Assembly: GCF_003918875.1 (NCBI RefSeq)
Contig: NW_025766983.1
Location: 1,116,001-1,180,000 of the forward strand
Direction of reading: 5' to 3'
DNA length: 64,000 bases
Source of the DNA: Haliotis rubra
Lineage: Eukaryota
The notes under the pieces were generated by a model. The model was not told the origin of the DNA and searched no databases. It saw only the letters and a program-made list of their open reading frames with translations. The position numbers and the translations under genes are program-made. The stretch's first letter is position 1. The number at the start of each line of letters is the position of its first letter. Shown here piece after piece: positions 1,183 to 33,536 of this stretch.

Positions 1183-1303
1183 ATGTGGAGGTGTTCAGTC
1201 TGTACCTACGACAATGCCGACCAGCATCTGCTGTGTGTTGTGTGCAACATTGGAAGAAATGATCAGTATCCAGTTCAACACCAGGTGTCCAGTCATGGTT
1301 GGG
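1183..1303 (+). CDS. RanBP2/NZF-type zinc finger exon (candidate first coding exon of the GIMAP gene)
   Basis: MWRCSVCTYDNADQHLLCVVC matches W-x-C-x2-C-x3-N-x6-C-x2-C exactly, with TY and a hydrophobic residue before the last Cys. ATG has A at -3; acceptor TTTCAG at ~1136; phase-1 donors after 1297 (GTTGGG) or 1303 (GTAATG). Confidence 0.7.
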
Positions 1304-1574
1304 GTAATGACCAGCTGTTTAATATTGTGCGGAAGGGGTGGGGTGCCGGGATGTTTTTCTTAGACATGTATATTCAGAGCCAAGTCTTCTGTACATGTAC
1401 CTTTTCCTCAGAACAAAGTAACCGGACATATGTTTCAACGACAACTTTTGTTCAGGACAGCCAGTAATACGTTTTGTAAAATTGGTTGTTCAAAACGATG
1501 TTTTAATCTTACATTTGATAAGTTTGTAAATGCAATGTACATGTGAAATGGCATCAACACTGTTCCTGATCTTG

Positions 1575-2005
1575 AACCCGTGAAGATCCAGGTTAAAACT
1601 GATCTTCAGCAACCCATGTTTGTTGCAAGAGGCGTGAGTTAGTGAGTTATTATTTAACGTCACATCGGCAATATTTCAGCCATATCGTGACGAGAACATT
1701 TGACATTGAAATAGAATAAAAAAGGTAATGGAAAAACCTGCCGACGAAGGACAGTAAAAGATAATCACAGATGTCAATATAAAACTAGCGAACAAAGCTA
1801 AAATATTCCACAAGAGGCGACTAACATGATCGGGTGGTCGGGCTTGCTGATTTGGTTGACATACATGTTATCATTCATACTCCATTGCGTAAATCGATGC
1901 TCATGCTGTTGATCACTGGATTGTCTGGTCCAGACACGACAATTTACAGACCACAGCCATATAGCTGGAATATTGCTAAGTGCAGCGCTAAACAACAACC
2001 AATCA
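1575..2005 (+). mobile_element. SINE family B, interrupted by a LINE-like 3' fragment
   Basis: ACCCGTGAAGATCC..CAAGAGGCGACTAAC..GATCACTGGATTGTCTGGTCCAGAC..GCTGGAATATTGCT; split at 1635-1810. Confidence 0.8.
1635..1810 (-). mobile_element. 3' terminus of a retroposon (probable LINE 3' UTR, family C)
   Basis: Flanked by a 9-bp TSD CAAGAGGCG (1626-1634, 1811-1819); (ACTC)n-type tail on the minus strand; homologous to 46104-46336. Confidence 0.7.
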
Positions 2006-2159
2006 ACCATTAAAATATTACCCGAAAAAAACCCAACAGTTATTGATGTCAATTTATTTTAAGATATACAAATGCTATGTATGCCGTGTGTAACTGTTCC
2101 CAAACTAAATGGGAATATGTGACGCACATTGCCGGGCTTACAAACTTTCCATTTTTCAG

Positions 2160-2276
2160 GTGCTGGAGCGAGTATGGGGCCATGTCCGTCCTGTATGTTG
2201 CAAAGCGCACTACTTTCCTACATGCTGCATAGCCCTCATATGCATGGTTTCTACGGAAAAACAATTGGTCCTCAAG
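2160..2276 (+). CDS. Predicted internal phase1-1 exon of the GIMAP gene (linker)
   Basis: TTTCCATTTTTCAG acceptor, CAAG|GTAAAA donor, 117 nt, open: AGASMGPCPSCMLQSALLSYMLHSPHMHGFYGKTIGPQ. Confidence 0.55.
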
Positions 2277-3582
2277 GTAAAAGACAAATACAAATGAATG
2301 TAACGTATTCCACAAGCAATATCCATTTAGAAAACCAGTGACGAATGTACGGTTGCCTCAAGCCTTGGATAACTTGGAGGATTTGCATAGATAACGCCAA
2401 AGGTGGATTGTTTACAGTCGTAGTGGATATTATATTTAGTTTGTTGAACTTCTCGCATACGCTGACATTGCCGGCAAGTAACGCGCGGCACTGAACGGGG
2501 ATTCCATGCAGAATTGGTCCCCCTAATCCCTTCCGGGCAAGTGGATCAGATGGTCAGAATAAGTGACCTCACAATAACAATCCCCGGATTGTCTGATAAA
2601 GTACTGTCGGAAATAGATAAAAACTGTTTTTAGCCTGTTACTCTGTATCACTAAAATTCACATAACTGCAAATAGCATATGTTGAAATAACCCACATCGG
2701 CCTAACTTGGCGTTCAGTGGAATGCCTAATTGGATATCCAGAAATGTGTGTTTACTGGTAAAATCGAGCAAAACTTAGAAACAATACGAACAATACGTAT
2801 GACGACGGACCGTCGACTCACACCTGGCATGAAATGCATGTGCTGCCTACAGGTACAAGGGCCATCTCAAAGATATTTATGCCTTTTCATGTGTGTTGAA
2901 TATTTCTCATCTGTTAACATCTTGAGTGTCTTTAGTTCATAAGGATTATGTGAAAGAGTATGATAACCATAGAAACGTTAAATATTAAATGTCTAAAAAT
3001 ATATAGGTGGCATGGCCACAGGAAGATCGACAGGACTGGATATTGTTGTTATGACAATTTTTTCTTCCCAAGTTTAATTCCCCTAAAGGATTATCTAACC
3101 TTAGCTGATATCTCCAGATATCTACCCGGCCAGACCCCAACCACCGTCTGCGACACCCGTCCTGGTTTTGCTTTTGAGACGACCCCTCCTACCTGTTTCT
3201 TTTTATAGTGATAGTGAGGCTCCATGGTAGCTACGCCCTTAATAGTTTCAGTATTAAAGTTAGGATCTTTTACATTAGCTATCGTTTATTATGAAGTTAA
3301 GTCTAATTTCAAAATGGGCAATTTTTAAAAGTGTCCTTTGTAATACAATATCATCGCACACTAATTTGCATAAAACCATGGTCTGTCCAAATAAGTCGCT
3401 TTGGACTGCATTGCTCATTTCTGCACTAATCTCTCATCAGTAAAGTCCTGGTTTACGTTTCCCATCTACCTACCACTGCTTCAGTTAGGCCGAACTTAGT
3501 TTAACGGATATTTCACACTTTCACATATTAACGACATAAGATCTAAATTCTATAAAAGGTTGTTTTTTTCAATTCCGACAGT

Positions 3583-3838
3583 GACCCGTGAAGATCCGGG
3601 GTAGAATAGGTCTTCAGCAACCCATGTGCTTGCCATAAAAGGCGACTATGCTTGTCGTAAGAGGCGACAGTCAGTTTCGCTGACTTGGTTGACACATGTC
3701 ATCGGTTCCCAATTGCGCAGATCGATGCTCATGCTGTTGATCACTGGATTGTCTGGTCCAGACTCGATTGATTACAGACCGCTGCCATATAGCTGGGATA
3801 TTGCTGAGTGCTGCGTAAAACTAAACTCACTCACTCAC
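3583..3838 (+). mobile_element. SINE family B
   Basis: GACCCGTGAAGATCCGGG..TGCTTGTCGTAAGAGGCGAC..GATCACTGGATTGTCTGGTCCAGACTCG..GCGTAAAACTAAACTCACTCACTCAC. Confidence 0.9.
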
Positions 3839-4060
3839 TATTTCCGACAATACTTTAGGACTCGAATATCTACTGGCTGCTGCACCACTCAGCTGTCATA
3901 CTGCCCTTAAACAACAACCACACGAAGAAACATAGTAAGCATGGAAAACACTCATCTTCCTGACTGATAGTTTTATATGATGAATTAATGTTTTCAAGAT
4001 ACCGAAAATTAAAAACAAATCATATTTACAGCATTTAAATGTAAACAGTTGTTACTTCAG

Positions 4061-4132
4061 GAGGGATGTTACAAGGACACGGAGGAGGGATAGACCCATT
4101 TTCAGCCTTTGCGACACCACTCCAATATGAAG
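4061..4132 (+). CDS. Predicted internal phase1-1 exon of the GIMAP gene
   Basis: GTTACTTCAG acceptor, GAAG|GTGAAT donor, 72 nt, open: GMLQGHGGGIDPFSAFATPLQYE. Confidence 0.5.
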
Positions 4133-4381
4133 GTGAATATTGATAAAAGCGGCGTAAAATAAACTCACTCAGTGACCCAATAATGTTGCAGATAGGCAAC
4201 GTTTTCAGAGAGGAAAATTTAAACTCAAGATAATTTGGTTGCTAGTCTTTTTTAAAGGATCAAATAAAATAACAGATCTATCTTATGCAGTTATGTTAAT
4301 ATACTAATTGCATTATTTAGGGAAATAGGTGGTTTAATTATCGCTATCAGTGTGCCTATGTTAGGTCGATTGGCCGAGCCA

Positions 4382-4445
4382 GGGCCCGGTTGCACAAAGC
4401 GATCGTAGTATGATGACAACACGATCGCTTCGTTGGACGGGCACC
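4382..4445. repeat. Short imperfect palindrome (tiny MITE-like hairpin)
   Basis: GGGCCCGGTTGCACAAAGCGATCGT ... ACGATCGCTTCGTTGGACGGGCACC are imperfect reverse complements. Confidence 0.5.
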
Positions 4446-4677
4446 GTTGTTTGATCTGACTGAGAATTGTGGTTTGCCAGCTCCAGTCCTATTCACCAGT
4501 ACTGTTCAATCCGACATTACCACCAAACTCACTCACACGCACAGTCAAGTATATTGCGCATTACAGCGGTAGCTTTAATAAGATGAATAAAAGATGGTTA
4601 TAAATGTCACTAGAGACACTAGAGAGCTTACTCCAGAATGCTGGATACTAACCCCACTTTGTAATCGACACCTCTAG

Positions 4678-4785
4678 CCATGAACAGGGCATCAAATAGG
4701 GAACAGTTCCCCATGGCGGTACCGACAAATCCCACCAATCGACCGAAGTCAGCGCTTAGAGAGGCTCCAAGAACAACAGCGGACG
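4678..4785 (+). CDS. Predicted internal phase1-1 exon of the GIMAP gene (also carries an ATG at 4680)
   Basis: Perfect branch point TACTAAC (4646-4652), CCTCTAG acceptor, GACG|GTAGGT donor, 108 nt, open: MNRASNREQFPMAVPTNPTNRPKSALREAPRTTAD. Confidence 0.65.
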
Positions 4786-4980
4786 GTAGGTCTGTGCAGA
4801 ATCCATTGCCATTGTCTACAGAAGTTGACGCTTGACCTGAATATACGTCCATGCATCTTGTGTATGTGCACCATACAAACCATGTACATTGCTCAGTCCA
4901 GTAAATGTACCACTGAATCCCTGTCGCAGAGACTGACCATGATCCTTAATGAAAGAATGGCGTCCTATGTTTACAAAATA

Positions 4981-5163
4981 TACTCATGGAAACAAAAAAG
5001 GGAACACATGAAAGTACATGTGTTCCTTTATTCTTTTCCAGGTATCTTCACAAGGTTATGTATAATTGCAGTTTGGGTGAAAGTTTGGAAATAAATAAAG
5101 GAACACTTGTACTTTCATTTGTTCCCTTATTTCTACATAAGTACATATTTGTTTCCACAAGTA
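4981..5163. mobile_element. Tc1/mariner-type MITE (TA TSD)
   Basis: TACTCATGGAAACAAA ... TTTGTTTCCACAAGTA inverted ends flanked by TA; same family as 14683-14844, in opposite orientation. Confidence 0.75.
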
Positions 5164-5324
5164 TATATTTGTGACAAGAGAAATTAATATCATTTATAGT
5201 CTCAAAATACTCGAAATCCCAGCTATATCTACTTATTTCGTTACTGCGACACATCTACTTTAAAGCTTCATTCTATGGGACATTTGTCACTAAACCTGAC
5301 ACACTCTATCGTTACAAATTATAG

Positions 5325-5456
5325 CTGCCTCCACGTCCAGTTGGGATCCTGAAGCCGAGAACAATGCCTCCAACATACCACAGCCTACCAGAGTGACTCC
5401 AAGAATAGCCAAAACCTCATCAAGAGTTGCAGAGACGCCAAGAGCATCAGCTCAAG
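5325..5456 (+). CDS. Predicted internal phase1-1 exon of the GIMAP gene (S/T/P/R-rich)
   Basis: TTATAG acceptor, CAAG|GTAAGA donor, 132 nt, open: ASTSSWDPEAENNASNIPQPTRVTPRIAKTSSRVAETPRASAQ. Confidence 0.65.
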
Positions 5457-5586
5457 GTAAGACTGCTAAGAATTTTTAGAAATATTCTTTTAACGTTTCT
5501 CCTATATCTACAACTTTTTATTACTGAATGTTTAAACTTAGAATCTATTCCTCTATTATCTGGATCTACTGAATGTTCACTGTCAG

Positions 5587-5700
5587 CAAGTCTAAATGGA
5601 GGCATCAGAAACGCAATCATAAATCTGTCTAATTCAAACATCTTAGTGACCGAACAACACGGAATTTCGAAAACACCAACACATGAATCCCCAGTGGCAG
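5587..5700 (+). CDS. Predicted internal phase1-1 exon of the GIMAP gene
   Basis: CTGTCAG acceptor, GCAG|GTAATA donor, 114 nt, open: SLNGGIRNAIINLSNSNILVTEQHGISKTPTHESPVA. Confidence 0.5.
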
Positions 5701-5968
5701 GTAATACAACAGTTCATACTCAATGGCCAGGTCTAAAAGTCTCAAAACATAATGGTAGACCTACATTTTAGAAGTTGGTTCCAATATAGAACAATGACAA
5801 TGGCCAGATCTAAAGATCTCAAAAACATAATGTACGAAACGTCGCAGAGAAAAAGAAGTCGTTATCCATAAAGTTTGTTCTATATCATAATGGTATAGAA
5901 AAGTGGTCTGATGAATGACTCTGGACGGTTAGTTCCTTCATATGAAATCAGGGTTTGACTATCCACAG

Positions 5969-7065
5969 TTGATGGACAAGGAACACAACCAGCAGCAAAT
6001 TCGAAAAGTGAAAGAAGAATAGTCTTGCTGGGTAAGACTGGCTCAGGAAAGAGTGCAACAGGAAATTCAATACTTGGGCATAAAGCATTTTTATCAAAAG
6101 CCTTTGGACTCTCAGTTACCAAGACTTGTAACAGAGGAACTGCTGATAGATTTGGACGAAGATTACAAGTGTTAGATACACCAGGGCTGTTTGACACAAG
6201 GATGTCCAATGCTGAGGTTTCCAGGGAGTTGGTCAAGTGTATTGGCATGGCGGCTCCAGGGCCACATGTCTTTGTCCTGGTTCTCAGGATGGATCGGTTC
6301 ACGAAGGAGGAGCAGGACTCAGTGAATCACTTCAAGAAGATGTTCGGTGAGGGGATGCTGAACCACACGCTTGTGCTGTTCACCCGGAAGGATGATTTGA
6401 TCCATAACCAAACAACTTTTCAGAGATTCCTGAATGACGCTTCGATGGAACTCAAAAGATTTCTACAGCTGTGTGACAACCGATGTTTGACCTTTGATAA
6501 CCGAAACCCATCGGATACGGATGTAAAAGCATTCCTTCAAATCGTAGATAGCATCCTTATACAAAACGGTGGCAGTTGGTACAGCAATGAAATGTTTACA
6601 GAGGCTGAAAAGGCAATTCTTCAACGTGAAAACGAAATAAGACAACAATTTCATGATGGTACTGGCGTTACATTAGCGAAATTGAAACGTGATTTTGATG
6701 AACATATGCAGCAATTAAAAAAGAAATGTTCAAGGGAGATTTCAAGGTTGGAAGGGTTACGTCGACAGCAATGTTCTCTTTCACCCGCTATGTCCACACA
6801 GGCAGAGATACAGGGACTGGAAGAACAACTGCAGGAATTGAGGGCTTGTCAAGATGAAGATAAGCGAAGACTTCAAGCAGAATATACAGCCAAGGAGGAA
6901 AAATATCGAGAAATAATTGCAAACGCAAATCGTGATTACAGAGAAATAGTCCGCAAGGAGATACAAACTGAAAACAAACTTACCATGCGAAAATTTGGCA
7001 AAATGATTTTAAAAGTTGTGACTGTTCTCATCCCAGTTATAGCAGGTGCTTTGGGAGTTCTGTAG
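5969..7065 (+). CDS. GIMAP: GIMAP/IAN (AIG1 family) GTPase, terminal exon A
   Basis: RIVLLGKTGSGKS (G1), SVT (G2), DTPG (G3), PGPHVFVLV/RFT-EE conserved box, TRKD (G4), FDN, C-terminal coiled coil and hydrophobic tail ILKVVTVLIPVIAGALGVL; phase-1 acceptor CCACAG at 5968. Confidence 0.95.
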
Positions 7066-7135: not shown

Positions 7136-7983
7136 TACCAATTTCAAACTTAAGTCAACTTCAAACTGAACAATAATGCATTATCATACAAACCTACTTA
7201 TTGGCAGTTTAGCGTATGATATACTATCTACCGGCATAATACCATAACAATGACTTCGTCGACATCAACATGATGTGACAACTTGGTCTCGTGGCTATAT
7301 GGCTGGAGAAAGACCCTCACGCAAGCTAATTCAATAGTATTATTCCATGAAAACAATGTACACTACAAGCTGTCTTATACAGGGCGATTGCCTTCAACTG
7401 TAATTATAGTGTCGTTAATGACTTTCCAGGAACATGTATACTGAATACACGTCTATTCCATGCTATGTTTGACATGCTATGCTATGATATTAATATGGTG
7501 TGCGTGTAAGGGTGGCATTCATTATGCTGTCAACGTCTTTCGTAGGGCAATAGTCAGGCAGTATGATCGTTATTTGTTCTATACAGCTTGTCTTGTTACA
7601 ATTTCATAAGAGTACAAGCCTATCATAACGCCAAGGTTCTTCTTGGGCTGTGCTTTCCGGAAAGATTTAATAGGTACGTTTCTGGGTTACTTTCGGCCTA
7701 TATGCACCCAGATATTTCTTAGAAGTATGTCCATTTTCATAGCCATATCCAGTTGTAATCTACATATTGATACACACCTATTGATAAACATCTGTTCCCT
7801 TTCTTAACCAAAATGTTATTCTTAAAAAAGGTCAATTGCAGTGCTATACTTCTACATCTGCGGATCAAGTGATAATTCCATACCAGATATATCATACATG
7901 AATAGAGATTATCCTTGGCAAAATGAATACATTTTATTGTAAGTCCCAATAAAAACCTTTTTTTATATTTGGTGTGCATTCAG

Positions 7984-9088
7984 ACAGCAACACTGAACTT
8001 CTACAGACTACAGAATCTCTGGAGAAAGAAATTCGGATCGTGCTCATCGGTCGCACTGGATCTGGTAAAAGCGCCACTGGCAACACCCTCACAGGAAAGA
8101 AGTTGTTCCACTCCAAAGTGGCAGGTCAGTCAGTCACTAGACAATGCAAACGTACCTCCACTCAGCGATACGGGTACAGTCTCGAGGTAGTGGACACGCC
8201 GGGATTGTTTGACACAGGATTGTCAAACACGGACACGATTAAAGAGGTGGTGAAATGTGTGGCATTGACATCCCCGGGACCTCATGCCATCATTTTAGTG
8301 ACGAGAATAGACCGGTTCACAGAGGAGGAGAAAATACAGTGGAACACTTCAGGGCTGTGTTCGGTGAAGGAATGAATGAGTACCTGTTCGTTATCTTTAC
8401 AAGGAAAGACGATCTTGATGCTGATAGGTCAAGTATAGAAGACTTCGTTCAAGCGGTCCCTCCGGAACTGAAACAGCTCCTTGCTGATTGTAACAACAGA
8501 TACATTGCCTTCAACAACAGACTTCCACGTCAAGATGATGCCCAGGTACGTACATTGTTCAACATGATTTATGCTAATGTAGAGAGAAACAACGGAACGT
8601 GCTACACAAGCGAGATGTACAAGGAAGCTGAGCTTGTGATGAAACGAAGAGAGAAGCAGCTTGCCGAGCAAATGGAGGAACATGCAAAGCAGGAACGGCA
8701 AAAGTTAGAGAAGGAATTTGAGGAAACTGTAAAGAAAATGAAGGAGGACAATGAGAAACATGTCAGTGGTCTTCAAGATCAACTCAAAGTTTTAGAAACG
8801 ACTTCAAAACAATCTGATGAAATAAATGCTCTGAAGAAGGAGATTGCCAATGCAAAGAAACAAGCCGAATTTGACAGGGAAGTGAAGGACCGAGAACACA
8901 AGAAGGAGATGGGGGCAATGGAAAAGAAGCTGACAGAGGATCAGAAAATGGCTCGTGAAAAGGCGCGCGAGGAGATAGAGAAGGAGGAATCACTCGGTAT
9001 TTGGGATGGATTGAAGCAACTTGGCCGAGGAATAAAGAACACGTTCTCACGTATTTTTCAAGAAAGTGACATTGCATACTCAGTGTGA
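7984..9088 (+). CDS. GIMAP: GIMAP/IAN (AIG1 family) GTPase, terminal exon B, with one frameshift (probable sequencing error)
   Basis: RIVLIGRTGSGKS, SVT, DTPG, PGPHAIILV, RFTEEE, TRKD, FNN, long coiled coil. ORFs 7974-8375 and 8255-9088 join if one A is added to the A4 run at 8331-8334 (EEE-K-NTVEH); phase-1 acceptor CATTCAG at 7983. Confidence 0.9.
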
Positions 9089-10147: not shown

Positions 10148-11578
10148 AGTCAATTAAATATAGCAAAATTGCACACTGGGAATGCAGACATATCCGTCTT
10201 TGGCACCAACTCGAGGAAAGTCAGTTTGAGTGTCACATGGAGACGTGTGGTGGCGCTGAAGTCAATACCTCGTGTGACCACCGTGAGCATCCAGAACTGC
10301 ACGGCATCGCCTCGGCATCGAACGAATAAGTCTCAGAATCACGTGTTGCCCAATCGCAGCCCACTCTGCCTGTGCCTGTACGAGTTGCTGAAGTGTCGTC
10401 GCACCCGTCTGTCCAGGGCATCCCACAGATGTTCGATCGGGTTTAAGTCCGGTGATCTTGAGGGCCAGGGGAGCACATTGATGTTGTGGTTCTGGAGGAA
10501 GTCTCTAGTGTGACGTGCTGTGTGGGGCCTGGCATTGTCCTGTTGAAACAACTCCCTCTGGCGATCAATGATTGGAAGGAGGTGTGGTCGTAGGATTTCG
10601 TCACAGTACCGTTGAGCTGTCAGGTTGCCCTGGATCATCACCGAATCACTTCTCCTACGGCAGGTGATCGCTCCCCACATCATAACACTGTCCCGGCCGA
10701 ATCTGTCCACCTGGGGAACGCAAGCGTCGGCGAAACGTTCACGTCGACGTCTGTACACCCGCATTCTTCCATCGCGTCGTTCCAATAGAAATCGTGATTC
10801 ATCACTGAACCAGATTCTACGCCAATTCGGTAGGTTCCAGGCCTGAACGTTGGTGCACCATTGAACTCGATGTCGACGATGTTGTTGTCGAAGCACAGGG
10901 CCAAAATAAGGTCTTCTGGCACGTAAACCAGCCTCTCTCAACCTGTTCCTGATGGTCTGTGCAGAAAGCCTCCTCAATCCGGGTATTTGTCGAGCGGTAC
11001 TGGTCGCCGTAGCTGTTCGATGACGCAGGTGATGTACCCGGATTTTGCTATAGCGATCCTGCGCCGCAGTGATCGCTCGAGGTCGCCACTACGTGGGGCA
11101 TCTGCTACCGCATTCTGCCGGCGATATCTCTCCCAGAGCCGTGAAATGGTGCTTTGGTGAACATTCATGCGTCGGGCAACTGCACGTTGAGACTGGCCAG
11201 CTTCAAGCAAACCAATGGCGATATGACGGTTGGCTTCACTTAGACGTGGCATTTTGCGTTCGTCAACAATATTCCAAATACAGTGAATAATCGACAGACA
11301 GCGATCAACCTTTTATACCCATCATTGAGACTATCTGATCCCTAACTTTCACGTGCATTGCATGTGAATTGTGTATTCTGTGACCCCTACACGCCGAAAT
11401 TGAAAATCATGCTGTTAAATACGAATATTTTATGGATGGTGCGTTTTGTTGTGATGTTTCAAAACATAAACACCATAGGACTCATAAACAGAGCAAAACA
11501 TTTTGTAAAATGAATCACGTTTTAATTCATTGCTACATGAAATTGCTATTTTCATGATGCGTTTCTTTTTGTGGAGTG
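10068..11578 (-). mobile_element. Tc1-family DNA transposon, decayed
   Basis: Imperfect TIRs (TACTCTCCCAAAAAAGAAACGCA / TGCGTTTCTTTTTGTGGAGTG) with TA on both sides; encloses the transposase. Confidence 0.9.
10262..11252 (-). pseudogene. Tc1 transposase (DD34E), frameshifted
   Basis: Paired-like HTH MPRLSE..RAVARRMNVHQSTISRL; FSDESRF, QQDNARPH and SPDLNPIEHLW with 34 residues between D and E; C-terminus ..HGGHTRY* in another frame; several frameshifts. Confidence 0.92.
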
Positions 11579-12063: not shown

Positions 12064-13415
12064 TAGTAGATGTACAGTAGATGTACAGTAGATGTACAGT
12101 AGATGTATAGTAGATGTACAGTAGATGTATAGTAGATGTATAGTAGATGTACATAGTAGATGTATAGTAGATGTACATAGTAGATGTATAGATATACAGT
12201 AGATGTACAGTAGATGTATAGATAGATGTACAGTAGATGTAGTAGATGTAGATGTATGTACAGTAGATGTAGTATGATATAGTAGATGTACAGTAGATGT
12301 ACAGTGTATAGTAGATGTATAGTAGATGTATAGTAGATGTATACAGTAGATGTATAGTAGATGTAGTAGATGTATGTAGATGTATAGTAGATGTACAGTA
12401 GATGTACAGTAGTAGATGTATAGTAGATGTATAGATGTAGATATAGTAGATGTATAGTAGATGTAGATGTACAGTAGATGTACAGTAGATGTATAGTAGA
12501 TGTATAGTAGATGTATAGTAGATGTACAGTAGATGTAGAGTAGTAGATGTATAGTAGATGTATAGTAGATGCATAGTAGATGTATAGTAGATGTATAGTA
12601 GATGTATAGTAGATGTACAGTAGATGTATAGTAGATGTATAGTAGATGTATAGTAGATGTACAGTAGATGTATAGTAGATGTATAGTAGATGTATAGTAG
12701 ATGTATAGTAGATGTATAGTAGATGTATAGTAGATGTATAGTAGATGTATAGTAGATGTATAGTAGATGTACAGTAGATGTATAGTAGATGTATAGTAGA
12801 TGTACAGTAGATGTACAGTAGATGTACAGTAGATGTATAGTAGATGTATAGTAGATGTATAGTAGATGCATAGTAGATGTATAGTAGATGTACAGTAGAT
12901 GTATAGTAGATGTATAGTAGATGTATAGTAGATGTACAGTAGATGTAGTAGATGTATGTATAGTAGATGTACAGTAGAGTAGATGTACAGTAGATGTACA
13001 GTAGATGTATAGTAGATGTACAGTAGATGTATAGTAGATGTACAGTAGATGTATAGTAGATGTACAGTAGATGTACAGTAGATGTATAGTAGATGTACAG
13101 TAGATGTACAGTAGATGTACAGTAGATGTACAGTAGTACATGTATAGTAGATGTATAGTAGATGTATAGTAGATGTACAGTAGATGTACAGTAGATGTAC
13201 AGTAGATGTATAGTAGATGTACAGTAGATGTATAGTAGATGTACAGTAGATGTACAGTAGATGTATAGTAGATGTACAGTAGATGTATAGTAGATGTACA
13301 GTAGATGTACAGTAGATGTACAGTAGATGTATAGTAGATGTACAGTAGATGTATAGTAGATGTACAGTAGATGTTTAGTAGATGCATAGTAGATGTATAG
13401 TAGATGTATAGTAGA
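12064..13415. repeat. 11-bp satellite (TAGATGTAYAG)n, ~1.35 kb
   Basis: Direct reading; accounts for the spurious 520 and 468 aa ORFs. Confidence 0.97.
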
Positions 13416-14247
13416 TATTTCTTTAGATACCATACGAAGTGAGAAAATGACAGTATTATGTATTCCCATGTATCATAGTCAATTGTTTCAGTTAAGTCAT
13501 GTATATCTGCGCGAAAAACAATGACAGCATAATCGTCGTCAGTATATAAATATATATATATCAACGTCAAGTTTATCAGTCAAGCAGTAGAATACATTAT
13601 TTGTGTCAGACATAAAACATTCACAGCGCAAGATAACATGCCAATCATAGTCACAGCAATGTCGAGTACAGTGGTTACATTCTTTTGACACATTTGCTCT
13701 TGATCCGATTTGGACACAAAGTTGCAGGGGTTGTCATAAATGTGGACAGAGATGGATCAGGACGTGCATTTGTAGGCGTGTGTGAAGTTTGCAGTATGGT
13801 GAGAAGATCCAGTGTCCAAATGTTTTCCGGTGTACTTATGTAGGGGATTGTAAATGCAATCAAGATGCACCTGTCATGCACAAGAGGTCACTGTATCTGG
13901 CGATACAATGAATTCTCTTTGGCATTTGTGATTTTATGCGAACATTTAATACCTTGTGGAAATAAGTTTGCTTTATATTGCAATGTTTTTACATTTTAAC
14001 TATTCTGTGAAAGACATCGGGACAACTGCAGCATTCAGTCAAGTGAAAATAAATCACAGTTTTACTCACGACCTTCTTAAATAAAGTAAATATATATAAC
14101 ACATTGAGAGTGACTTTTAGCAACATACCCGCAATATCACGGCGTGGGACACCAGAAATGGGTTTCGTACATTGTACCTATGTGGGGAATCCAGGCCTTC
14201 AGCGAAAGGTGAACACTCGTAGGACTGTTGCCTTTGCATACTGGTGA

Positions 14248-14413
14248 GTGAGTGAGTGAGTATGGTTTTACGCTGCTTTTAGCAATATTCCAGCAACATC
14301 ACGACAGGGGACACCAGAAATGGGCTTCACACATTGTACCCATGTGGGAAATGGAACGCCGGTCTTCAGCGTGACGAGCGAACGTTTTAACCACTAGGCT
14401 ACCCCACCACCCC
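14248..14413 (-). mobile_element. SINE family A with 13-bp TSD
   Basis: TSD TGCATACTGGTGA at 14235-14247 and 14414-14426; an older truncated copy lies at ~14110-14200. Confidence 0.9.
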
Positions 14414-14682
14414 TGCATACTGGTGACTCTGACCATTGTCAATGGTCATAAAAAGTTATATCACGTGGACACACATGTGGAGGAGGTCAAGCTTGCCAAT
14501 GCTGGTGATTATCCTCTAACAAAAAATATCTTAGTAATAAGTTGATAGTAACCTTATTTCACTAATTAATAAATAATAGCTCCACACGTCGTCCCTTGAC
14601 TAGAAGAAGAAAGAGAAGAAGAATTGTAGAATGTTTCAGTATAAAAGCCACAGGCACATGTCCATTACACAACAACAATATA

Positions 14683-14844
14683 TACTCATGGAAACGAATA
14701 GGGGAAAACACGAAAGTACAAAAGTCCTTTTATTTATTTCCAGATTTTCACCAACAGTGCAATATAAACCATGACAAGAAACCCGGAAAAAGAGTATTGG
14801 AACACATGCACTTTCGTGTGTTCCTTTATTTGTTTCCATGAGTA
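14683..14844. mobile_element. Tc1/mariner-type MITE (TA TSD)
   Basis: TACTCATGGAAAC..ACACGAAAGT / ACTTTCGTGT..GTTTCCATGAGTA inverted repeats, TA flanks. Confidence 0.8.
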
Positions 14845-16542
14845 TATACATACAATGTGGTGGTGTTGGTGGTTCGAAAGCTGTGCAGATGAAGGGTATT
14901 CTGTCATTTTAATGAATTGCTAAAAAAAACCTCTTCACTTTGATATGTCATCTTAATACACACTGAAGCCCTATCGTAATGAAACGTCTTAACACTACTG
15001 TGTACTGTTCACAAACGGGTGTTTATAGGTATGTGTGTACTTTAAGAACGATGTTGGGGGGGAAGGCTGCTAGCGACCAGAAGTTTAGCATTTCAATTGA
15101 TGAAATGCATGAATAGTGCTGACAGGCTTCTGAGAAATCCGCGTAGGTCGAACATATCCATACCACACTATTCACAGTGTTAGGGTTCGAGAGTACTCAA
15201 CCACGATCAAGAGACGTGATTTACTGCCATCTATTCAAGGACCAGACGCCAAGGACACAAACACGGTTGCAAGCAGAACTACTTACTGCGTAATAGAGAG
15301 AGCCCCAATATACATATGTCAGCTCAAATGACACCTATAACAGGTGTGTTTTTGAAGATGTGCCAAGTAAGGGTATAATATATTACACCTATGCCTGGTG
15401 GTATCAGGGTTATTCCACCCCACCCTCCACACACTCTCGTCATATTACCCCCTGCCAACTGCTCCCAGGTTGATTTTAAGTATAACATGATACAATATCT
15501 ATGTAGCATAAGTTTTATTTGGTTTGCTCAACGCCGCTTTGAACTGTGTTTCAATTACATTACGGCGCATAGCCTCAATATTCAGTACCGTGAAGAGCCA
15601 GGTTATAATCGGTCAGATACAAACCATGCTTGTCGTAAGGGGAGACTAACGGGATCGGGTGGTCACACTCGCTGGCTTGCGGAGTTCGTTGTTCTTTTTG
15701 TTGATCACCGGAATGCGTGGCTGACATTCGATCATTGCCTGCGTGTAGCACTAAACTATTTGAGAGTGACTGCGTGTAACATTTTTACACACGTATATCC
15801 CCAGAGTCCAGCGTGAGAGAGTGAGTTGGGAACTACATCACCTTTAGCAATATTCCAGCAATGTCATGTAGGGAATGGAACCACTAGGGTAAATCACCAA
15901 TCACACATTCCAGAATACAAATATAATTTAGATAAATGCACCAAAAGCCTATAATGATATATGTGGTCTAAAAATATGTATACTCTGATAAATATCCTGG
16001 AACTTTTCTCGTACAGAGGTTCATTTTCAAGCCAAATCATATGAGATGACGCTGAAAATAGATGTCCTATGAAAACACAGTCGAGACAAATCGTGCGATT
16101 TATCGTGCAACATACTCTGCTCATAGAAGAGATTTCTTATAGATATTGAGAGTTTTTTGTGCTCTTTTGGCAAATTAGTTGCAAGTGTCATGGAAATGGT
16201 GGACGTTTTGGACGTTTGAGAAGTCATTCAAGACAGAATAGATATATAATACTCTGTAAATCGAGGTTGTGGCGAGCGCTGCATCATGATTTACTGGCAT
16301 AGATGAATATTAGGATTGTTTTTATGCTATGTACATGTCAAAGGCTAAATTCAACATTCTTTATGAAAGCCTGGAGCTTTCACGGGTTTAAAACGTAAAT
16401 CATCTTTTACAATTTCTTTATTCCTTTTAATACTATGGGCTCGAGAATAAATATACAACATGTCATGTATGAAATCAATCAAGTGCATAACATATAAAGA
16501 TATGAATGATATCTGCGTGGTGACAACGTCAATGGATCAATG

Positions 16543-19500
16543 TTAGGATCTGACTTTGAATATAAGTTTATAGTCTCTCGGCCTGTTTTTCTCTGCCTTG
16601 AAGTTTGGCTCCAGACTTGGTTCAACGCCATCTTCTGGGGATATGTGGAAGTTCTTCAGGAGTCCGGCCAGGATGAGATGCAGCTCTGGCTTGGCCAAGT
16701 ACTCCCCTAAGCACGCTCTGCGTCCAACAGAGAAGGGTAGAAAGTGTGTGATGGTTGTCTTCACCTTCCCCTCCTCTGTAAGGAACCGTTCTGGTTTGAA
16801 GGTTGCAGGGTCCTCCCAGTGGTCTGGGTCGTGGTGAATAGCCCAATGGTTTATCAGAACGTTGGAGTTCTTGGGAACGTCGTAGGGTCCTGTGGAAACA
16901 CCATAAGAGATTTAACAAACATGCCTGGTTACGTGGTTAATATCGAGTCCATACGTTGATAAGGATCTTTTAGAAATAAGTCAGCGTTTCAGCTAATAGT
17001 GCGTGCGTGCGTGCATGAGTTTCTGTGTGCCCATGTTACTCCGTACTAGTACCAGTGTTATACTTCAAGCCAAAGGAGACACCATGACGCAATATACAAA
17101 GTACAGATGGGAGACAAATCGGATTGATGGGGATATTATTGCCGAGACCCAAAACATTTTTTTCCATATCCACCTTTACCTGAAATGTGATACTGACATA
17201 AGTTATAACCAGTGATTATAATAATAATAATAATAAATGTGAACTTATAATGCGCCTTTTCCATGCACAAGGCCCATGCTCAAAGCGCTAACAAAGTGAG
17301 TGGATAATAATACATATATACAATAAGGGACTAGTTGCTAGTCATAATGCAGTGAAAACAGATGAGTCTTGAGAAGTCGTTTGAAGGAATAAAAGTCAAC
17401 TGCTGATTTAATGGTGATAGGGAGAGAGTTCCAGAGTAGAGGGGCAGAGCAGACAAAGGATTTCCTTCCAAAAGTTTGCAGTTTGAACCGAGGCACAGAG
17501 AGTAGGTTCAGATTCTGAGAACGGAGCTGTCTTTCTGGAGTGTACGGGGTAAGGAGTTCCTTCAGGTATTCTGGGCCTATGCCATTTAGGCATTTGTAGA
17601 CAAAACACAATATTTTAAAGTCAATTCTTGATTTAACAGGCAGCCAGTGGAGGTTTTCATGACAGGTGTTATGTGTGAGCGCTTTGAAGTTCTGCTTATG
17701 ATTCGGGAGGCTGTATTTTGGACATTTTGCAATTTTGATAGCAGCTTCTGAGAAATACCAAAAAGGAGGCTATTGCAGTAATCAATTCTTGATATAACAA
17801 GTCCCTGGACCAGACCGTGTGCTGCATCACGACTGATGAGATGGCGTATTCTGCCAATGGCTCGTAGATGAAAGAAGCATATTCTGCAGAGTTGATTTAC
17901 ATGAGTGTCCATCGCCAGGTGTGAGTCAAGTGTAACTCCAAGGTCTTTAACAGAGTCCACTGCTTGTATCTCTGCATCTGCTACCAAAACAGTTTTGGTG
18001 GTAATTTGTTTTTGCATTTGCCTGGATCCAATAACCATCACCTCAGTTTTGTCATCATTTAACTTTAGCAAGTTGTTTGTCATCCATGACTTAACATCTT
18101 TAGTGCAGTCTGTTATTTTATGGAGACCCGTGTGAAAGTCCTTGGGAGTTGAGTTTTTCTGAAGTTGAGTGTCATCTGCAAACGAATGATGGCAAATGCC
18201 ATGTTTGTCAATTACGTCTGCAACATCGGTCGTGTATGCTATGAAAAGAAGCGGACCGAGTACCGATCCCTGGGGTACACCACAGTGGACCAAGGAGGTT
18301 TGTGATTTGATGTTATCTAACAGGACAGTCTGACTTCTGCTTTCGAGATAAGATTGTAACCAGATGAGGGGTACCCCATGGATTCCAAATTGGCCCTTGA
18401 GTCTTTCCAGAAGGAGTTGGTGGTCGATTGTATCGAAGGCAGCAGAGAGGTCAAGCAAGATAAGAGTAGCTAGTTTGCCTTCATCAACAGCTGTAAGTAA
18501 GTCGTTAGAGACTCTGAGGAGAGCTGACTCGGTGCTATGATTTGATCTGTAAGCGGACTGGAATTTATCCAAAAGTGAAAAAGCAGAGAAATGATCCCTG
18601 AGTCGAATATTGACTGCTCTCTGAAGTATCTTTGATATAAACTTCAGGTTAGAGACTGGTCGAAAGTTTTTAAGCAAGTCAGAATAGGTTCAAACAGATG
18701 ATCATCGGATCTTGGCCCGACCAAGGGATGCAACTCTGCACAACCTTTAATAACCGAACCACTCGTGATCCTGGTACAGTTGAAACAGTCAACAGTTTGC
18801 TGTTTTGCATGTTCAAAATTTATACGCAAATCTATGCAGCTAACGTACCGTTTATGACATATTTCAAACTGGAAAACAACAGTAACTTAAATAACCCCCA
18901 AACCGCAGTTCCAGAACTATTTAGTACATTCCACCGGTCCTTGAGAAATCTTACTACCCTGGAGCCAATGGGCAAGCGTAAATATACCTATTTTAGCGTC
19001 CTTTATTGCCCTGTGGGGTAGTCCGAAAGGGACAACAGTGCTGAGTCTCATGCTTTCGTATATCACAGCTTGAAGGTAGCTCAGGTAGGGGCGGTCAACA
19101 ACGTTAGCCATACATCTCGACTCTGGAAACAAATACATTAGTATAAACAGATGTTGATAAGACGTCTTTCGTCTAAATACATAACCCATGACACCTTAAG
19201 ATTGATTTTTTTCCAAAATAATAATAAACATAAACTTTCAAATGCTGACTGATAATATGGTGCGTTTTCCGTCGTCCCTACGATATTGGGTAAAATCTGG
19301 ATGTATCTCAATCATTGACTGTTCAAATCGATTCAACTGCTTTCATCCGAACAAATGAAAGAGATCAGAATTATAGGCTTTGCAATATCCCACTTTGGTT
19401 TCTTCCAAACTGACATTACTACGAGTTGAACACTGAAATTGGTCAGTGGTCAATGTCTCTTACCTAGCACCTCGTCCAGTTCCTGGTGGACCTTCTCCTG

Positions 19501-22500
19501 AATGTCTTGGTGGACAGCCAGATACAGCAGCGTCCACGACAACGTCAGTCGGACAGGGTCGTTACCGGCTGGAGTACAAAGAAGAAACAAGTCTGTGAGT
19601 GTTATCACGTCTTGACGATACTTCATCTTTATGGTGGCAATTCAGGTGGAACTTCAGAAGCTGTGGTATTAGTGATCGAGTGAGTATGGTTTTATGCCGC
19701 TTTTAGCAATATTCCAGCAACATCACGGAGGGCACACCTGAAATGAGGCTTCACGCATTGTGGCCATGTGGGGAGTCGAACCAGGCCTTCGGCGTGGCGA
19801 GAGAACGCTATCCCATTGCGCTTTAGTGACCCACCAGGCTTCATGAGCACTGGCAGCAGAACCTTAAAACCTATTCTGCCCACTGGTACAAATATTGCAG
19901 TCCCTCCTCAACAGATAGTGAGATCGGTACCTGAATCAAATGTGTCAAGACCTATATTATAGAATACCCCAACAACTACATGCACAGTCCTACTTTTGTA
20001 TTACGTATTCTGCATTACTTTTGTAATGCACCCTCTCAAGTTGAGAAAAACGCCGTTAGCATCCAGAAATTGGGCACTTCGTCGACTTACCATTGAACAT
20101 ATCGAGTATGGTATGCACCACGTGATCATCTGTTAGACGCTGAGATACCTCCACTTCCTCTTCCTCATCTTCAAGTTGAGACAACAAGATGGCATCTAAC
20201 ACATCCCGTATGTTCTCTGCAGTAAAAGAGTAACACAATGGTGAATATTGTTCTGGGTATAAGGATTCCCAGTAATACTTCATTTTAATCAAATTCTCGA
20301 GCTGTGAATATGATTTCACGCCGCTTTTAGAAATATTCCAGCAATATCACGGCAGGGGACACCAGAAATGGGCTTCACACATTGTACCCGTGTGAGCAAT
20401 CGAACCCGGGCCTTCGGCGTGACGAGCGAACACTTTCACCACTAGGCTACCCCACCGTGCCGGGTACTTCACAAACAGAACCCAGTAGAGCAAGTTAAAA
20501 GCTTGCTTCCTCTCTAGAAATATATATTCAATATAGCCGATGCAAAAGTCCATCAATTAACATAACATCAGTAAGTAATTCAACCTATAGCTCCCCTCGT
20601 CACTACAGTTGCAGAACAAAGTCCCATAATTCCCATAACAGCCGTGCAGAACCTTCAAAGTAAGTTCATTTGCTGAAAAAAGGTTCACAAAGGTTTTACT
20701 TCCAGAAAATCCAGTCATCAATACTTTGCTTCATAACATACCTGCAGCACATAATGTATGTGCAGACTGTCAGAAGATGAGTAGAACCTGATGGAACTCA
20801 CCTGGGTTAAATGTTTCTTTGTGAATCTCGACTCTCTTTTCAATGTATTTCTTTAATCGCTTGACAGTCGTGAGCATGTTATTAAATCTTGGCGTCGGCA
20901 GCCACTTCAGAGGCGGGACGATATCCTCCCAGAAGAAAGATTCTGTGAGCTTGCTGTAGTCGTCCAAGAGCGCCATATACTTTCGGAAGTCATTACTTCC
21001 TACGTCATGCCTACAATCAACATGACATCATGACAACTGTTGCACACAGACCTACAATCAACATTACGTCATGAAAACTGTTGCACACGGACCTACAATC
21101 AACATGACGTAATGACAACTGTGTTGCACACGGACCTACGTTAATGAGTGAATGAGTTTAGTTTTACGCTGGTTTTAGCAATATTCACGGCGATGGACAC
21201 CAGAAATGGGCTTCACACATTGTACCCATGTTAGGAATGGAACCAGGGCCTTCAGTGTGACCAGCGAACATTTAATTACTGGGCTACCTCACCGACCCTA
21301 CAATAGCATATACACATACAGTCGGGCACCGTTGTCTCGATATTCATGCGACCAAGAAAAAATATCGAGTTATCCGAACTTCGAGACATCCGACCAGGCC
21401 ATATCATCACATATCACTATGAAAGAAAACAAAACGCTTCTCAGTATGGTTTGATTCGAAACTATAATCCCTTATCAGTCGTGTTTAGTCGTAACAGTGA
21501 GTACTTCCTAATTAATTCCTTCTTAATTAATCCTACTTACTAATTACTAATCTACTGTTTGGTAATATATCAGAGTTAGATATGCTTTCTTACATTCTGT
21601 CATTCGTATTGAGAGGAACATCAAACATCAAGTAATTGAATGCGAACAAATCGCTCAAATCACATCTGCTTGAATGAGTGTACGTTAATTAAGGCCGCAT
21701 TTAGTATAGTTCCTACTTAATGACGGTCGAGTCGGGACCCGACAAACCAGTCAGTGGAATCACAACTAACGACCCAGAAGGTGTCTGAAGATGAAGCCAA
21801 GTGCAATGCATCCTTATTAATCAAATGTAACACTCACGTCTTGTCGAAGCAGACGCCACACATGATGTTCGCGTCGATGAGGGCGAGGTAGGGCAGAGGA
21901 TCAACCGCCGTCTTCTCCGTCTTCAGCAGCTCTATCACCTTGGAGACAGACTGGTGAATCTTGTCCTCCAGGTGGAAGCCAGACAAGAACGTGTAGGACC
22001 TAAAAATAAAGACCTTAATTTTAATACCGTAACTACTATTGCTCCTCCACCTCCTACAACAACTACTGCTTCTACTTACTACTATAACTACTACTACTGC
22101 TGCTGTTGCTACTACTAATGCTGCTACTACTACTACTACTACTACTGGATCTTCATGTCGTAAGCTGACTCCCACCAAAACACTTAAGAACTTGAGGCCG
22201 ATTCTTACGGTATCAGGACATATCACGGCAGGAATAGCAAAGAATGGGTTCCTATGTGGTGTCTACCAACACGACACACTACTAAGACAACGGACCAAAT
22301 GTAAAACGTATTCCAGATTCGCAACAGCACGACTGCACCACCCGTGCCCAGATTTGTCACAAACTATCATTTCAGAATATGACTGACTGACTGACTGAGT
22401 TTAGTTTGTAGCACTATTCCAGCAACATCACGGCGGGGGACACCAGAAATGGGATTAACACATTGTGCCCATGTGGGGAATCGAACCCGGGTATTCGGCG

Positions 22501-29231: not shown

Positions 29232-30659
29232 TTATCGATATTTTACATACTTACATCGCTACTTTTGAATAAATTCTTACATCGCACGTGTTATGGTATA
29301 AATGTTACCTGAACGTAAATACAAATAATAGAACATCATTATATTGTGACACTTTTAAGTATGTAATTGAAAGTATTCGCACCGTATGTCTTGAGAATAT
29401 ATTTCACTTAAACAATGAGTATGTGATGAGATGAAAACGTGTTGTATTATATCAGTGTAAATATATGAATAAAATCAGTTAATGAGTCATGGTTATATCG
29501 TTTTACATCTTTGATGTATACAGTATATATGACATGCATGTATACAGACAGCGTACGTCTTTGGTATGTTTTACAGTGAAATGAAATTTAAGCGTGTTGT
29601 ATTACAGGGGGTATAAACAGGGATCGACACTATATAACGTGTTGTAGATTATCCCTGGTATAAATTAATAATTCCTGTTGTCAGAATAGTTCTAGTTATG
29701 AACAAAACCTAACACAACATTTACTCTTGAAAAAGTCAAAACTGGGCTCGGGTTATGACTTAGAGTTTGGTTTAAGTTGGGGAACAGATATTCGTCAGAA
29801 TAGAATACCTTGAAGTCAAAAGCTGTTGATGACTGCTTGTAACAGATATTCGTCAACACCTGACCTGATGACCCTACATTCACCGTGACCCAGGACATTG
29901 CTAGCTTTTCGGTCACGTGATGTCGGAACCTGTCCGCCTGAACACACGTAGCACCTCAATGCTCATATTCAATGCATACACACAGTGTACAATACAATAA
30001 GCGCAGTAGATAGGAACGGTGTATATCGAACAATGTCACTTACTAGTGCGAATTTAGAGTTGTCTCCTCTTCCGTCTACAGCCGCATGCCTATCTCCTCA
30101 GGTGAAATGTACAATTTGTGTCGCTGTTGACATGCTGTGAGCGCCCCGTACCGTGACGAGGGGAACAACTGGGGCCCTATTTGGGTTCTTTCACGAGTGA
30201 CGGAGAATCACGCTTAATTGAACCAATGAAATTAGCATCTGAGGAGAAACGTGCCAGTCGAAAGATGATCTGTGTCAAGGTGATAACTTCTGTACCTCAT
30301 TTTCTGTGTTGATTAACCCCGGAGGCCCTGTAGAGGTTATGTCAAACGTGTTTATTTCAAGAGTTGACAAATACGAAGGGTAATTTATTGGGTGTGCCAT
30401 AAATGTAGAGCAGGTATACTTATACAAATACTGTTGGAAGTTTTACAATGGGGTAATGTAATGTGTAATGTCCACGTGGTGAAGACTACGGCTGAGTCCG
30501 GGAGCTACGTGTAATTCAATCTGTTTCGGGAGATCGGGGTTGTGCCGATTTTGTCTAATGCACCGCAATACGTTGTGCTTTCTTTGGGCTCTCCAGAAAC
30601 GTTGAAAGTACGCTTGCACTCTGTGTCGTCCCGACAAGTACCAAGCCCTGTAACACACC

Positions 30660-32600
30660 GGTACAACACAATAACAATACCACACCAGTACAGTACCATG
30701 ACAGTACCACGCCAGTACAGTACCATGACAGTACCACGTTAGTACAATACCATGACAGTACCACACCAGTACAATACCATGACTGTACCACACCAGTACA
30801 ATACCATGACAGTACCACACCAGTACAGTACCATGACAGTACCACGCCAGTACAGTACCATGACAGTACCACACCAATACAATACCATGACGGTACCACA
30901 CCAGTACAGTACCATGACAGTACCACACCAGTACAGTACCATGACAGTACCACGCCAGTACAATACCATGACGGTACCACACCAATACAGTACCATGACA
31001 GTACCGTGCCAGGACAGTACCATGACAGTACCACACCAGTACAATACCATGACAGTACCACACCTGTACAAAACCATGACAGTGCCAGACCACTACAATA
31101 CTATGACAGTACCACGCCAGTACAATACCATGACAGTACCACACCTGTACTATACCATGACACTACCACGACAGTACCACACCAGTACAATACCATGACA
31201 GTACCACACCAGTACAATACCATGACAGTACCACGCCAGTACAATACCATGACAGTACCCACCTGTGTACAATACCATGACAGTACCACACCAGTACAAT
31301 ACCATGAAACCAGTACTATACCAGTACAGTACCATGACAGTACCACACCAGTACAATACCATGACAGTACCACACCAATACAATACCATCATGACAGTAC
31401 CACACCAGTACAATACCATGACAGTACCACACCAGTACAATACCATGACAGTACCACACCTGTACAATACCATGACAGTACCACGCCAGTACAATACCAT
31501 GACAGTACCACACCAGTACAATACCATGACAGTACCACACCAGTACAATACCATGACAGTACCACACCAGTACAATACCATGACAGTACCACACCTGTAC
31601 AATACCATGACAGTACCACGCCCATACAAATCCATGAAAGCACCACGCCAATACCATGACAGTACCACGCCTGTACATTACCATGAAATCACCACGCCAA
31701 ATACAATAACATGACAGTACCACGCCAATACAATACCATGACAGTACCACACCAGTACAATACCATGACAGTACCACACCAGTACAATACCATGACAGTA
31801 CCACACCTGTACAATACCATGAAAGTACCACACCTGTACTATACCATGACAGTACCACGCCAGTACAATACCATGACAGTACCACACCTGTACAATACCA
31901 TGACAGTACCACACCAGTACAATACCATGAAAGTACCACACCAGTACAATACCATGACAGTACCACGCCAGTACAATACCATGACTAGTACCACACCAGA
32001 ACCACATACCATGACAGTACCGCAACACTACAATCAGTTGACGAGACAACACCTGTACAATTCCCATGACAATACCTCACCAGTACCACAATACCAATGA
32101 CAGTACCACACCTGTACAATACCATGACCATTACCACTACTGTAAAATACCATGACATAACCTCACCTCCACAATACCATGGCAGTACCACACCTGTACA
32201 ATACCATGACCAGTACCACACCTGTTCAATACAATGACATAACCTCATCTCAACAATACCATGACAGTACCACACCTGTACAATACCATGGCAGTACCAC
32301 ACCTGTACAATACCATGACATAACCTCACCTCCACAATACCATGACAGTACCACACCTGTACAATACCATGACCAGTACCACACCTGTACAATACCATGA
32401 CAGTACCACACCTGTACAATACCATGACAGTACCACACCTGTACAATACCATGACCAGTACCACACCTGTATAATCCCATGACATAACCTCACCTCCACA
32501 ATACCATGGCAGTACCACACCTGTACAATACCATGACAATACCACACCTGTACAATACCATGACATAACCACACCAGTACAATAATATGACCAGTACCAT
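30660..32600. repeat. 27-bp satellite (CAGTACCACACCWGTACAATACCATGA)n, ~1.9 kb
   Basis: Direct reading; source of the many MTVPHQYNT and WYCHGIVLV pseudo-ORFs. Confidence 0.97.
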
Positions 32601-33418
32601 TCAAGAACCACACAGGTACAAAAAAAGTACTGCAACACCACCTCAGTGAAGTGAGCCAACACTTGATTCTTTCCCAGCAAAAGTTAATTTACCATGGCAT
32701 GACAGATTGGTCATGTGAAAGTCATGAACGTGTATTCTGTTACGTGGCGCTCTCCACGCTGACTCACCAACACTCACCCAGACCGTCATTTCAGCAGAGG
32801 TCGAGACAACACAGAGTTTATGGTGACCTGGAAGTGTTTTGTGAAGATATACGCGCCTGGCTGACTTGGCTTTTACCTGAGTTCGGTATACCCGACCTTC
32901 GTGCCCGACAAAAGCCGATCCCACCAACCCGGCTTTAGACGAGCTAGTTCGTTCATCATGTCAAGGGGAATCGTTTCTCCTCCAAACAGCCTCCGGTTGT
33001 ATGTGGTCAGCAAAGGCTGTCTTTGCAAAACATTATCATGAACTCTCAGTTTCAGAAATTACGTTAATTTGTAAATGTAATCAATGTGTAGATCATTGTA
33101 GGTACGTGCGTGTGTCAATGCGTGCGTATTAGGGGAAGGGTGTGCGTGCTTGCGCGCGCGTGTGTGTGTGTGTGTGAGAGAGAGGGGTGTTCATACGTGT
33201 ACACAAATACAAAATTTCTACTGTTGATCTTGAACTAGTGCTTCAATATGTTTTGTATTCCTTCTTCGTTTATTGGTGTTGTTCCAGTAAATTTATGACA
33301 AGCAGAACTATTATATATATCAGGGGAACATTTGTTTGTTAAATAAATGTTGGATTTTTTATCTGCACCCTTAACTATTGACCCGTAAAATGATTCGCTC
33401 CCTCGTGAGCGACAGTCA

Positions 33419-33536
33419 GGTCACGTGATCACCCTCAGTCTATATTTATACTCGGTTTTGTTTGTGTCGGTCCGTGTCTCACGGTAGCTGATACCTCGAA
33501 ACATACAGAAGCGGATCTATCTTCATAATCGTAAGT
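33419..33536 (+). promoter_or_regulatory. Candidate CYP-B promoter and non-coding first exon
   Basis: E-box GTCACGTGAT at ~33420, TATA-like TATATTTATA at 33441, consensus donor GTAAGT at 33531; acceptor TTTCAATTTAG just upstream of the ATG at 34637. Confidence 0.4.

Follow-up and report, generated by a model that had tools for sequence, protein, structure and literature searches.

The stretch of Haliotis rubra DNA analysed here (the window, 64,000 nt, along the whole of which positions are counted) carries near its beginning, on the plus strand, a chain of small exons that opens with a RanBP2/NZF-type zinc finger and runs up to an exon encoding a GTPase of the GIMAP (AIG1) family, and it is this candidate NZF-GIMAP gene that concerns us. 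Two RefSeq proteins of H. rubra, P0132 and P0077, match the genome of the window at 100%. The first coding exon (1183–1303) begins with an ATG at 1183 that has an A at position −3, and its residues 2–21 fit the pattern W-x-C-x2-C-x3-N-x6-C-x2-C exactly, both as an earlier note on this DNA had described. Upstream of it, at 1100–1182, lies a putative 5′ untranslated region or core promoter, 80% identical to the corresponding DNA of H. asinina with one gap column and present at single-copy depth in whole-genome runs. The note had offered two phase-1 donors for this exon, after 1297 and after 1303; both are present, but only the latter (GGG/GTAAT) is kept in H. asinina.

Between the finger and the GTPase the note had placed five GT-AG segments, all multiples of three and open in phase 1, and we find each of them at its place: e2 (117 nt, 2160–2276), e3 (72 nt, 4061–4132), e4 (108 nt, 4678–4785, with an in-frame ATG at 4680), e5 (132 nt, 5325–5456) and e6 (114 nt, 5587–5700). 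The TACTAAC branch-point sequence reported for one of them stands at 4646, before e4, and is identical in H. asinina. None of the linker exons e2–e6 has a Pfam match, and every junction of the model is phase 1. The joined exons are free of stops, as claimed, and give a protein of 586 amino acids (aa) through donor 1303 or 584 aa through donor 1297; without e6 the protein has 548 aa. In the whole-genome runs the exons appear as single-copy islands in highly repeated intronic sequence. The sequencing runs listed for the locus were of DNA or of unknown type, none of them being RNA. Four whole-genome DNA contig sets span the introns; their joints run only from repeat to repeat, none of them being a predicted one, and have no bearing on splicing. 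Likewise, a gap of 170 nt within an intron in one genomic contig (X10 record 5) is a deletion and not a splice. Within intron 1, at 1395–1411, a perfectly conserved pyrimidine tract is followed by AG, and conservation falls right after it; the site may serve as an alternative acceptor or as some element of the intron.

The first of two GTPase exons, GIMAP-A, occupies 5969–7065 (7068 with its stop codon) on the same strand and has the phase-1 acceptor that the note had given it. Its product matches PF04548 with 213 bits (E 4e-63), carries the G1 (GKTGSGKS), G3 (DTPG) and G4 (TRKD) motifs and the conserved box PGPH, continues into a coiled coil and closes with about 20 residues that, on inspection of the sequence only, are uniformly hydrophobic up to the stop. 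A second exon, GIMAP-B (7984–9088, plus strand, AIG1 at 1.7e-37), also has a conserved phase-1 acceptor and could serve as an alternative terminal exon or belong to a gene of its own. In this assembly GIMAP-B is frameshifted: its A-runs at about 8330 and 9054 each lack 1 nt relative to H. asinina, with a shift of frame at either place, which reflects either a pseudogene or homopolymer errors of assembly.

Open segments of this kind are plentiful by chance. Counting AG..GT segments of 60–240 nt that are a multiple of three and open in phase 1, we found 111 between 1310 and 5968, and because so many like segments lie in the same 4.6 kb the exon chain alone is not beyond chance; it is conservation that raises it above chance. 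The comparison locus in H. asinina (L008; CM074534.1, 8718244–8739542) was found via P0001, the best homologue of the GIMAP-A exon (88% identity), and is collinear with the window. Upstream sequence is 71–74% identical between the two species and the GIMAP-A exon 90–91%, with an intron background of 0.75 identity and 18% gap columns. Against this background the NZF exon and e2–e5 all have equal length in H. asinina, align without gaps, share the open frame and retain each AG and GT (identity is 90% in e3, with identical splice contexts, and 84% in e4). The ATG, the Trp, the Asn and the four Cys of the NZF exon are kept together with donor 1303. Of 69 candidate segments that could be aligned, 16 are conserved on all counts, and every one of the 16 overlaps e2–e5.

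We simulated neutral evolution, taking the numbers of substitutions as observed and their spectrum from the introns. All five frames stayed open and the ATG was kept with P = 0.007, the Met, Trp, Asn and four Cys survived with P = 0.004, and the 18 splice bases were kept with P = 0.006, so that the joint neutral probability of frame, ATG, splice sites and zinc ligands is of the order of 1e-5 or less. An argument from the absence of indels (local P = 4e-6) was downgraded, as stretches of up to 333 nt free of gaps also occur in conserved non-coding blocks nearby. In a third abalone, represented by the genomic contig L021, e5 is open between AG and GT with a 6-nt in-frame insertion as its sole indel; the GIMAP-A acceptor there is identical, so that the acceptor context is the same in three species.

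The sixth exon fares differently. In H. asinina the acceptor of e6 reads AA, the donor is deleted and stops lie in frame, and in L021 the acceptor region is deleted; e6 is open with AG and GT in H. rubra only and is a doubtful or lineage-specific candidate. The linker proposed by the earlier note is thus upheld for e2–e5, which behave as selected coding exons, but not for e6. Constraint on the conserved exons is uneven. Pooled over the NZF exon and e2–e5, the ratio of non-synonymous to synonymous substitution rates (dN/dS) against H. asinina is about 0.68 with no codon-position bias, compared with 0.25 for the GTPase exon of GIMAP-A; the exception among these weakly constrained exons is e2, whose dN/dS of 0.18 indicates clear purifying selection. 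Exon e2 also carries a conserved C-x2-C-x11-H-x4-H motif (2183–2245) with no Pfam match, which could be a second small metal-binding knuckle. Searched with the peptides of the NZF, e2 and e5, the own genome yielded no paralogue of a linker exon, e2 and e5 both being single-copy, and matched the finger only weakly.

Could the linker exons nevertheless be segments of an intron or intergenic spacer that are open by chance, with the NZF a decaying remnant? The number of chance segments, the pooled dN/dS with no third-position excess and the long gapless non-coding runs nearby would fit such a view. However, it would have to accommodate a joint conservation that neutrality hardly ever yields, the coincidence of every conserved candidate with e2–e5, the low dN/dS of e2 and the in-frame indel of e5 in the third species, and we regard it as extremely improbable. 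Judged by comparison of the sequences, the NZF exon and e2–e5 are real, frame-selected and fast-evolving coding exons.

Where this front end leads is a separate matter. Because e5 ends in a conserved phase-1 donor, it must splice onward, and the only conserved phase-1 acceptors downstream on the same strand are those of GIMAP-A (5969) and GIMAP-B (7984); the gene called next at L008 in H. asinina, a P450, is on the opposite strand. The reading frame of GIMAP-A is closed by a stop immediately 5′ of the acceptor, the exon lacks an in-frame ATG ahead of the P-loop, and H. rubra offers no conserved mini first exon in front of it. The annotated relatives have the same design. P0132, a RefSeq gene of this contig that lies 40 kb upstream, consists of exons of 73, 36, 162 and 1097 nt with phase-1 introns throughout, and its 1097-nt terminal exon equals the coding part of GIMAP-A in length. 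P0077, also from RefSeq, has a phase 1-1 NZF exon and a phase-1 GIMAP terminal exon; it starts with a short ATG-bearing stretch of about 10 coding nt that appears to sit in an upstream exon. Given the conserved acceptors, a GIMAP-A exon that has no start of its own and this family gene design, an NZF-linker-GIMAP product is the most economical reading. It is very probable that the NZF and linker exons lead into one GIMAP exon or another; that the NZF exon and the four linker exons form the front end of the GIMAP-A gene, yielding an NZF-GIMAP-A product, we hold to be the probable reading of the sequence, with a probability of roughly 60%. The joins are predicted ones, drawn between exons that are under selection and along a gene design that runs through the family. 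The fusion that the earlier note had put forward is in this respect supported by cross-species selection and gene design, but the annotation of H. asinina gives GIMAP-A no NZF.

That annotation belongs to a group of observations that weigh against the NZF-GIMAP-A reading. In H. asinina, P0001 gives GIMAP-A its own 22-nt first exon, inside the e6 homologue, and no NZF; the ATG that opens P0001 is absent from H. rubra. A set of 5.8 billion proteins contains no protein of 200–637 aa from the locus that holds the GIMAP-A exon, though other H. rubra RefSeq proteins are included in it, and in a representative library of 1.84 billion proteins none has the finger of the window. To these are added the pooled dN/dS with its missing codon-position bias, and the gapless runs of 100–330 nt in neighbouring conserved non-coding blocks, which weaken any argument from missing indels.

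The most serious competitor keeps the NZF exon and e2–e5 but has them feed GIMAP-B, or both GIMAP exons as alternative terminal exons, with GIMAP-A expressed mainly from another start. The acceptor of GIMAP-B would allow this, and GIMAP-A is annotated separately in H. asinina, where the gene table also has an entry for a 521-aa product whose range runs across GIMAP-A and closes precisely with the stop of GIMAP-B. By exon arithmetic the only exact fit to this length is NZF+e2+e4+e5+GIMAP-B, which is open and has exactly 521 aa. The recorded coding sequence (CDS) of the 521-aa product contradicts this fit, however, as its range opens upstream of L008:1, the first base of the fetched locus, and not at the NZF ATG, and a numeric match of this kind arises by accident with a chance of roughly 0.2; the product itself is absent from both protein libraries searched. 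Moreover, GIMAP-B is frameshifted in this assembly and may possess a start of its own: at 7923–7938, 45 nt before its acceptor, lies a conserved candidate mini-exon consisting of an ATG-led five codons plus one base and a GTAAGT donor, which would possibly make GIMAP-B a separate gene. The GIMAP-A of H. rubra, in turn, has no conserved start of its own. We consider the GIMAP-B alternative unlikely. The upstream CDS start also bears on an improbable variant in which e2–e5 are internal exons of transcripts begun farther upstream, be it in the neighbouring NZF-GIMAP gene or at another place, with the 1183 exon unused or a minor alternative first exon: the start maps just downstream of a P0132-like neighbour, and all exons of the cluster are phase-1 compatible. 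Yet conservation of the 1183 exon extends to its ATG, its zinc ligands and its donor, as well as to about 85 nt upstream of it, and, taking H. rubra sizes only, no combination of P0132-type exons with e2–e5 gives 521 aa.

It appears very improbable, finally, that the NZF is a small gene by itself, either as the 94-aa read-through open reading frame (ORF) at 1183–1467 or as a protein of NZF and linker that does not reach the GIMAP exon, for instance by reading from e6 to a stop at 5771. Both species have the read-through ORF (94 and 84 aa), and some 35 nt past the donor are well conserved, but so are donor 1303 and the donors of e2–e5, no conserved terminal exon precedes 5969, e6 is broken in two species, and the representative library holds no such small protein.

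If NZF and GIMAP-A are indeed joined, transcription would start just upstream of 1183 and the first exon would supply an N-terminal NZF finger. The four conserved symmetric cassette exons e2–e5 would encode a fast-evolving linker rich in Ala, Pro and Ser, and e5, or e6 where it is used, would splice to the GIMAP-A acceptor at 5969. The predicted product, about 548 aa long or 586 aa if e6 is included, is an AIG1 GTPase with a tail anchor whose NZF finger is borne on a long, flexible arm. With phase-1 introns throughout, exons could be skipped or swapped with the frame intact, and GIMAP-B might serve as an alternative terminal exon. Functionally, the finger would tether a membrane-anchored GTPase to targets that are marked with ubiquitin or are bound by the finger in some other way. 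A bolder and rather unlikely version is a single transcription unit in which a shared NZF-linker front end is joined by choice to GIMAP-A with its hydrophobic tail anchor or to GIMAP-B with a different C-terminus, the cassette exons tuning the length of the arm. If this held, the locus would encode a family of immune GTPases that are guided by ubiquitin to different membranes and combine a fast-evolving finger surface with fixed ligands.

The class of the finger is clearer than its ligand. PF00641 scores 15.6 bits (E 0.01) on the window finger, below the gathering cut-off of 27 bits, and the match covers only model positions 4–24 because the finger starts at residue 1; the H. asinina orthologue scores 25.6 bits (E 7e-6). 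Against solved chains, phmmer places the NZFs of YAF2/RYBP, TRABID, HOIP, RanBP2/Nup153 and TAB2 closest (E 0.0013–0.6), and the TRABID NZF shares a Cys-Thr-Tyr-x-Asn string with the window finger. A phmmer search of the whole library with the 94-aa NZF ORF returned 28 multi-finger RanBP2-type proteins (best E 2e-7) and neither an orthologue nor a fusion, a result that supports the finger class and not the gene model.

Ubiquitin-binding NZFs bear a signature, known from work on Npl4, of Thr plus an aromatic residue following the second Cys, with a hydrophobic residue in front of the fourth. The earlier note had read this signature in the window finger, and in H. rubra it is there (T8-Y9 and V20), but the H. 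asinina orthologue has Thr-Leu and Ala at these places; position 20 is Met in DNA contigs of a sister taxon. Outside its fixed ligands the finger has a dN/dS of 0.91. The sister-taxon contigs (X10 and X11; positions 1206–1286) show at least eight base differences in the 121-nt finger exon, seven of those listed changing an amino acid, and keep all Cys, a hint that the evolution of the finger surface is fast or diversifying. That the window finger binds ubiquitin is a reasonable expectation from the motif, to which we would give somewhat less than even odds.

Among known ubiquitin-binding NZFs (Npl4, TAB2/3, HOIL-1L, HOIP, TRABID NZF1, YAF2/RYBP) the Cys4 spacing is the same as in the window finger, and the H. 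rubra finger has Thr-Tyr behind its second Cys, like TRABID NZF1, together with a hydrophobic residue preceding the fourth. It differs from them in its Pfam score, below the cut-off, and in the Thr-Leu/Ala signature of its H. asinina orthologue. On the GTPase side the predicted product resembles the tail-anchored GIMAPs of vertebrates (GIMAP1, GIMAP5 type) in its AIG1 G1–G4 motifs, conserved box, C-terminal helices and hydrophobic tail; vertebrate GIMAPs are not known to have a zinc finger or a long N-terminal linker. A conceptual likeness, as an analogy only, is with the interferon-inducible GBP and IRG GTPases at ubiquitin-coated pathogen vacuoles, where an immune GTPase is also coupled to ubiquitin marks. 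GBP and IRG proteins belong to a different GTPase family and are coupled to ubiquitin via separate adaptor proteins, not by a built-in finger.

The closest likeness is with other abalone proteins. Proteins that combine PF00641 and PF04548 are annotated in H. rubra (P0077, P0118, P0132) and in H. cracherodii (P0131, with two fingers, and P0198); in the H. rufescens models P0096 and P0108 the finger is visible by sequence (22.8 bits in P0096), and a 566-aa product of H. asinina has a faint PF00641 match together with AIG1. The H. rubra genome contains at least six further pairs of NZF and GIMAP exons, on contigs C2093 and C426. A region search with the N-terminus of P0131 matched only P0131 and P0132, which gives no indication of taxonomic breadth. 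Like the predicted product of the window, the proteins P0132, P0077/P0118, P0131, P0198 and P0096/P0108 have an N-terminal finger, AIG1, a coiled coil and a hydrophobic or amphipathic C-terminus, and like the window locus their genes have phase-1 introns throughout and the GIMAP domain in one terminal exon. The window GTPase is only about 40% identical to theirs, however; its linker, in four or five cassette exons, measures about 180–220 aa versus 30–60 aa in the annotated paralogues, and its ATG lies inside the NZF exon itself, unlike in those paralogues.

The earlier note had known of no characterisation of this architecture. We found no paper that pairs a GIMAP with zf-RanBP or NZF, but the design is not unique to this locus, as NZF+AIG1 proteins already stand in the abalone annotations: the NZF-GIMAP architecture is common in abalone, visible in databases and apparently uncharacterised. 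What this locus adds is apparently an unannotated gene, a divergent member of the group with a long exon-modular linker built from single-copy exons. It shows a design that is maintained by selection between abalone species, and a long exon-modular linker that is possible and was missed by automated annotation. How GIMAPs, an expanded group of immune GTPases, find their targets is poorly understood, above all in molluscs, and a built-in finger of ubiquitin type, if true, would be a directly testable targeting mechanism, through ubiquitin-marked membranes or signalling complexes.

In the wider neighbourhood, two tandem NZF-GIMAP genes, P0132 and a copy of 97% identity, lie 23–44 kb upstream of the window (C2093:1072212–1077939 and 1090261–1093383), which makes the window locus the end of a four-GTPase cluster. 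Further along the window, two long stretches are repeated at a distance of about 43 kb. Positions 13289–20905 recur at 56357–64000, up to the window end, with 97.7% identity over 7.7 kb, and 31503–36560 recur at 51095–56252 with 91% over 5.2 kb, the second copy abutting a gap of Ns at 56253–56352. The cause is either segmental duplication, with the P450 region included, or an assembly artefact of haplotig type. A long tandem repeat array with many offset self-matches at 84–87% identity fills 30630–32600, and on the minus strand a Tc1/mariner-type transposase lies in two adjoining ORFs at 10342–11252 (DDE_3 at 1.6e-16, with HTH_Tnp_Tc3_2 and HTH_38).

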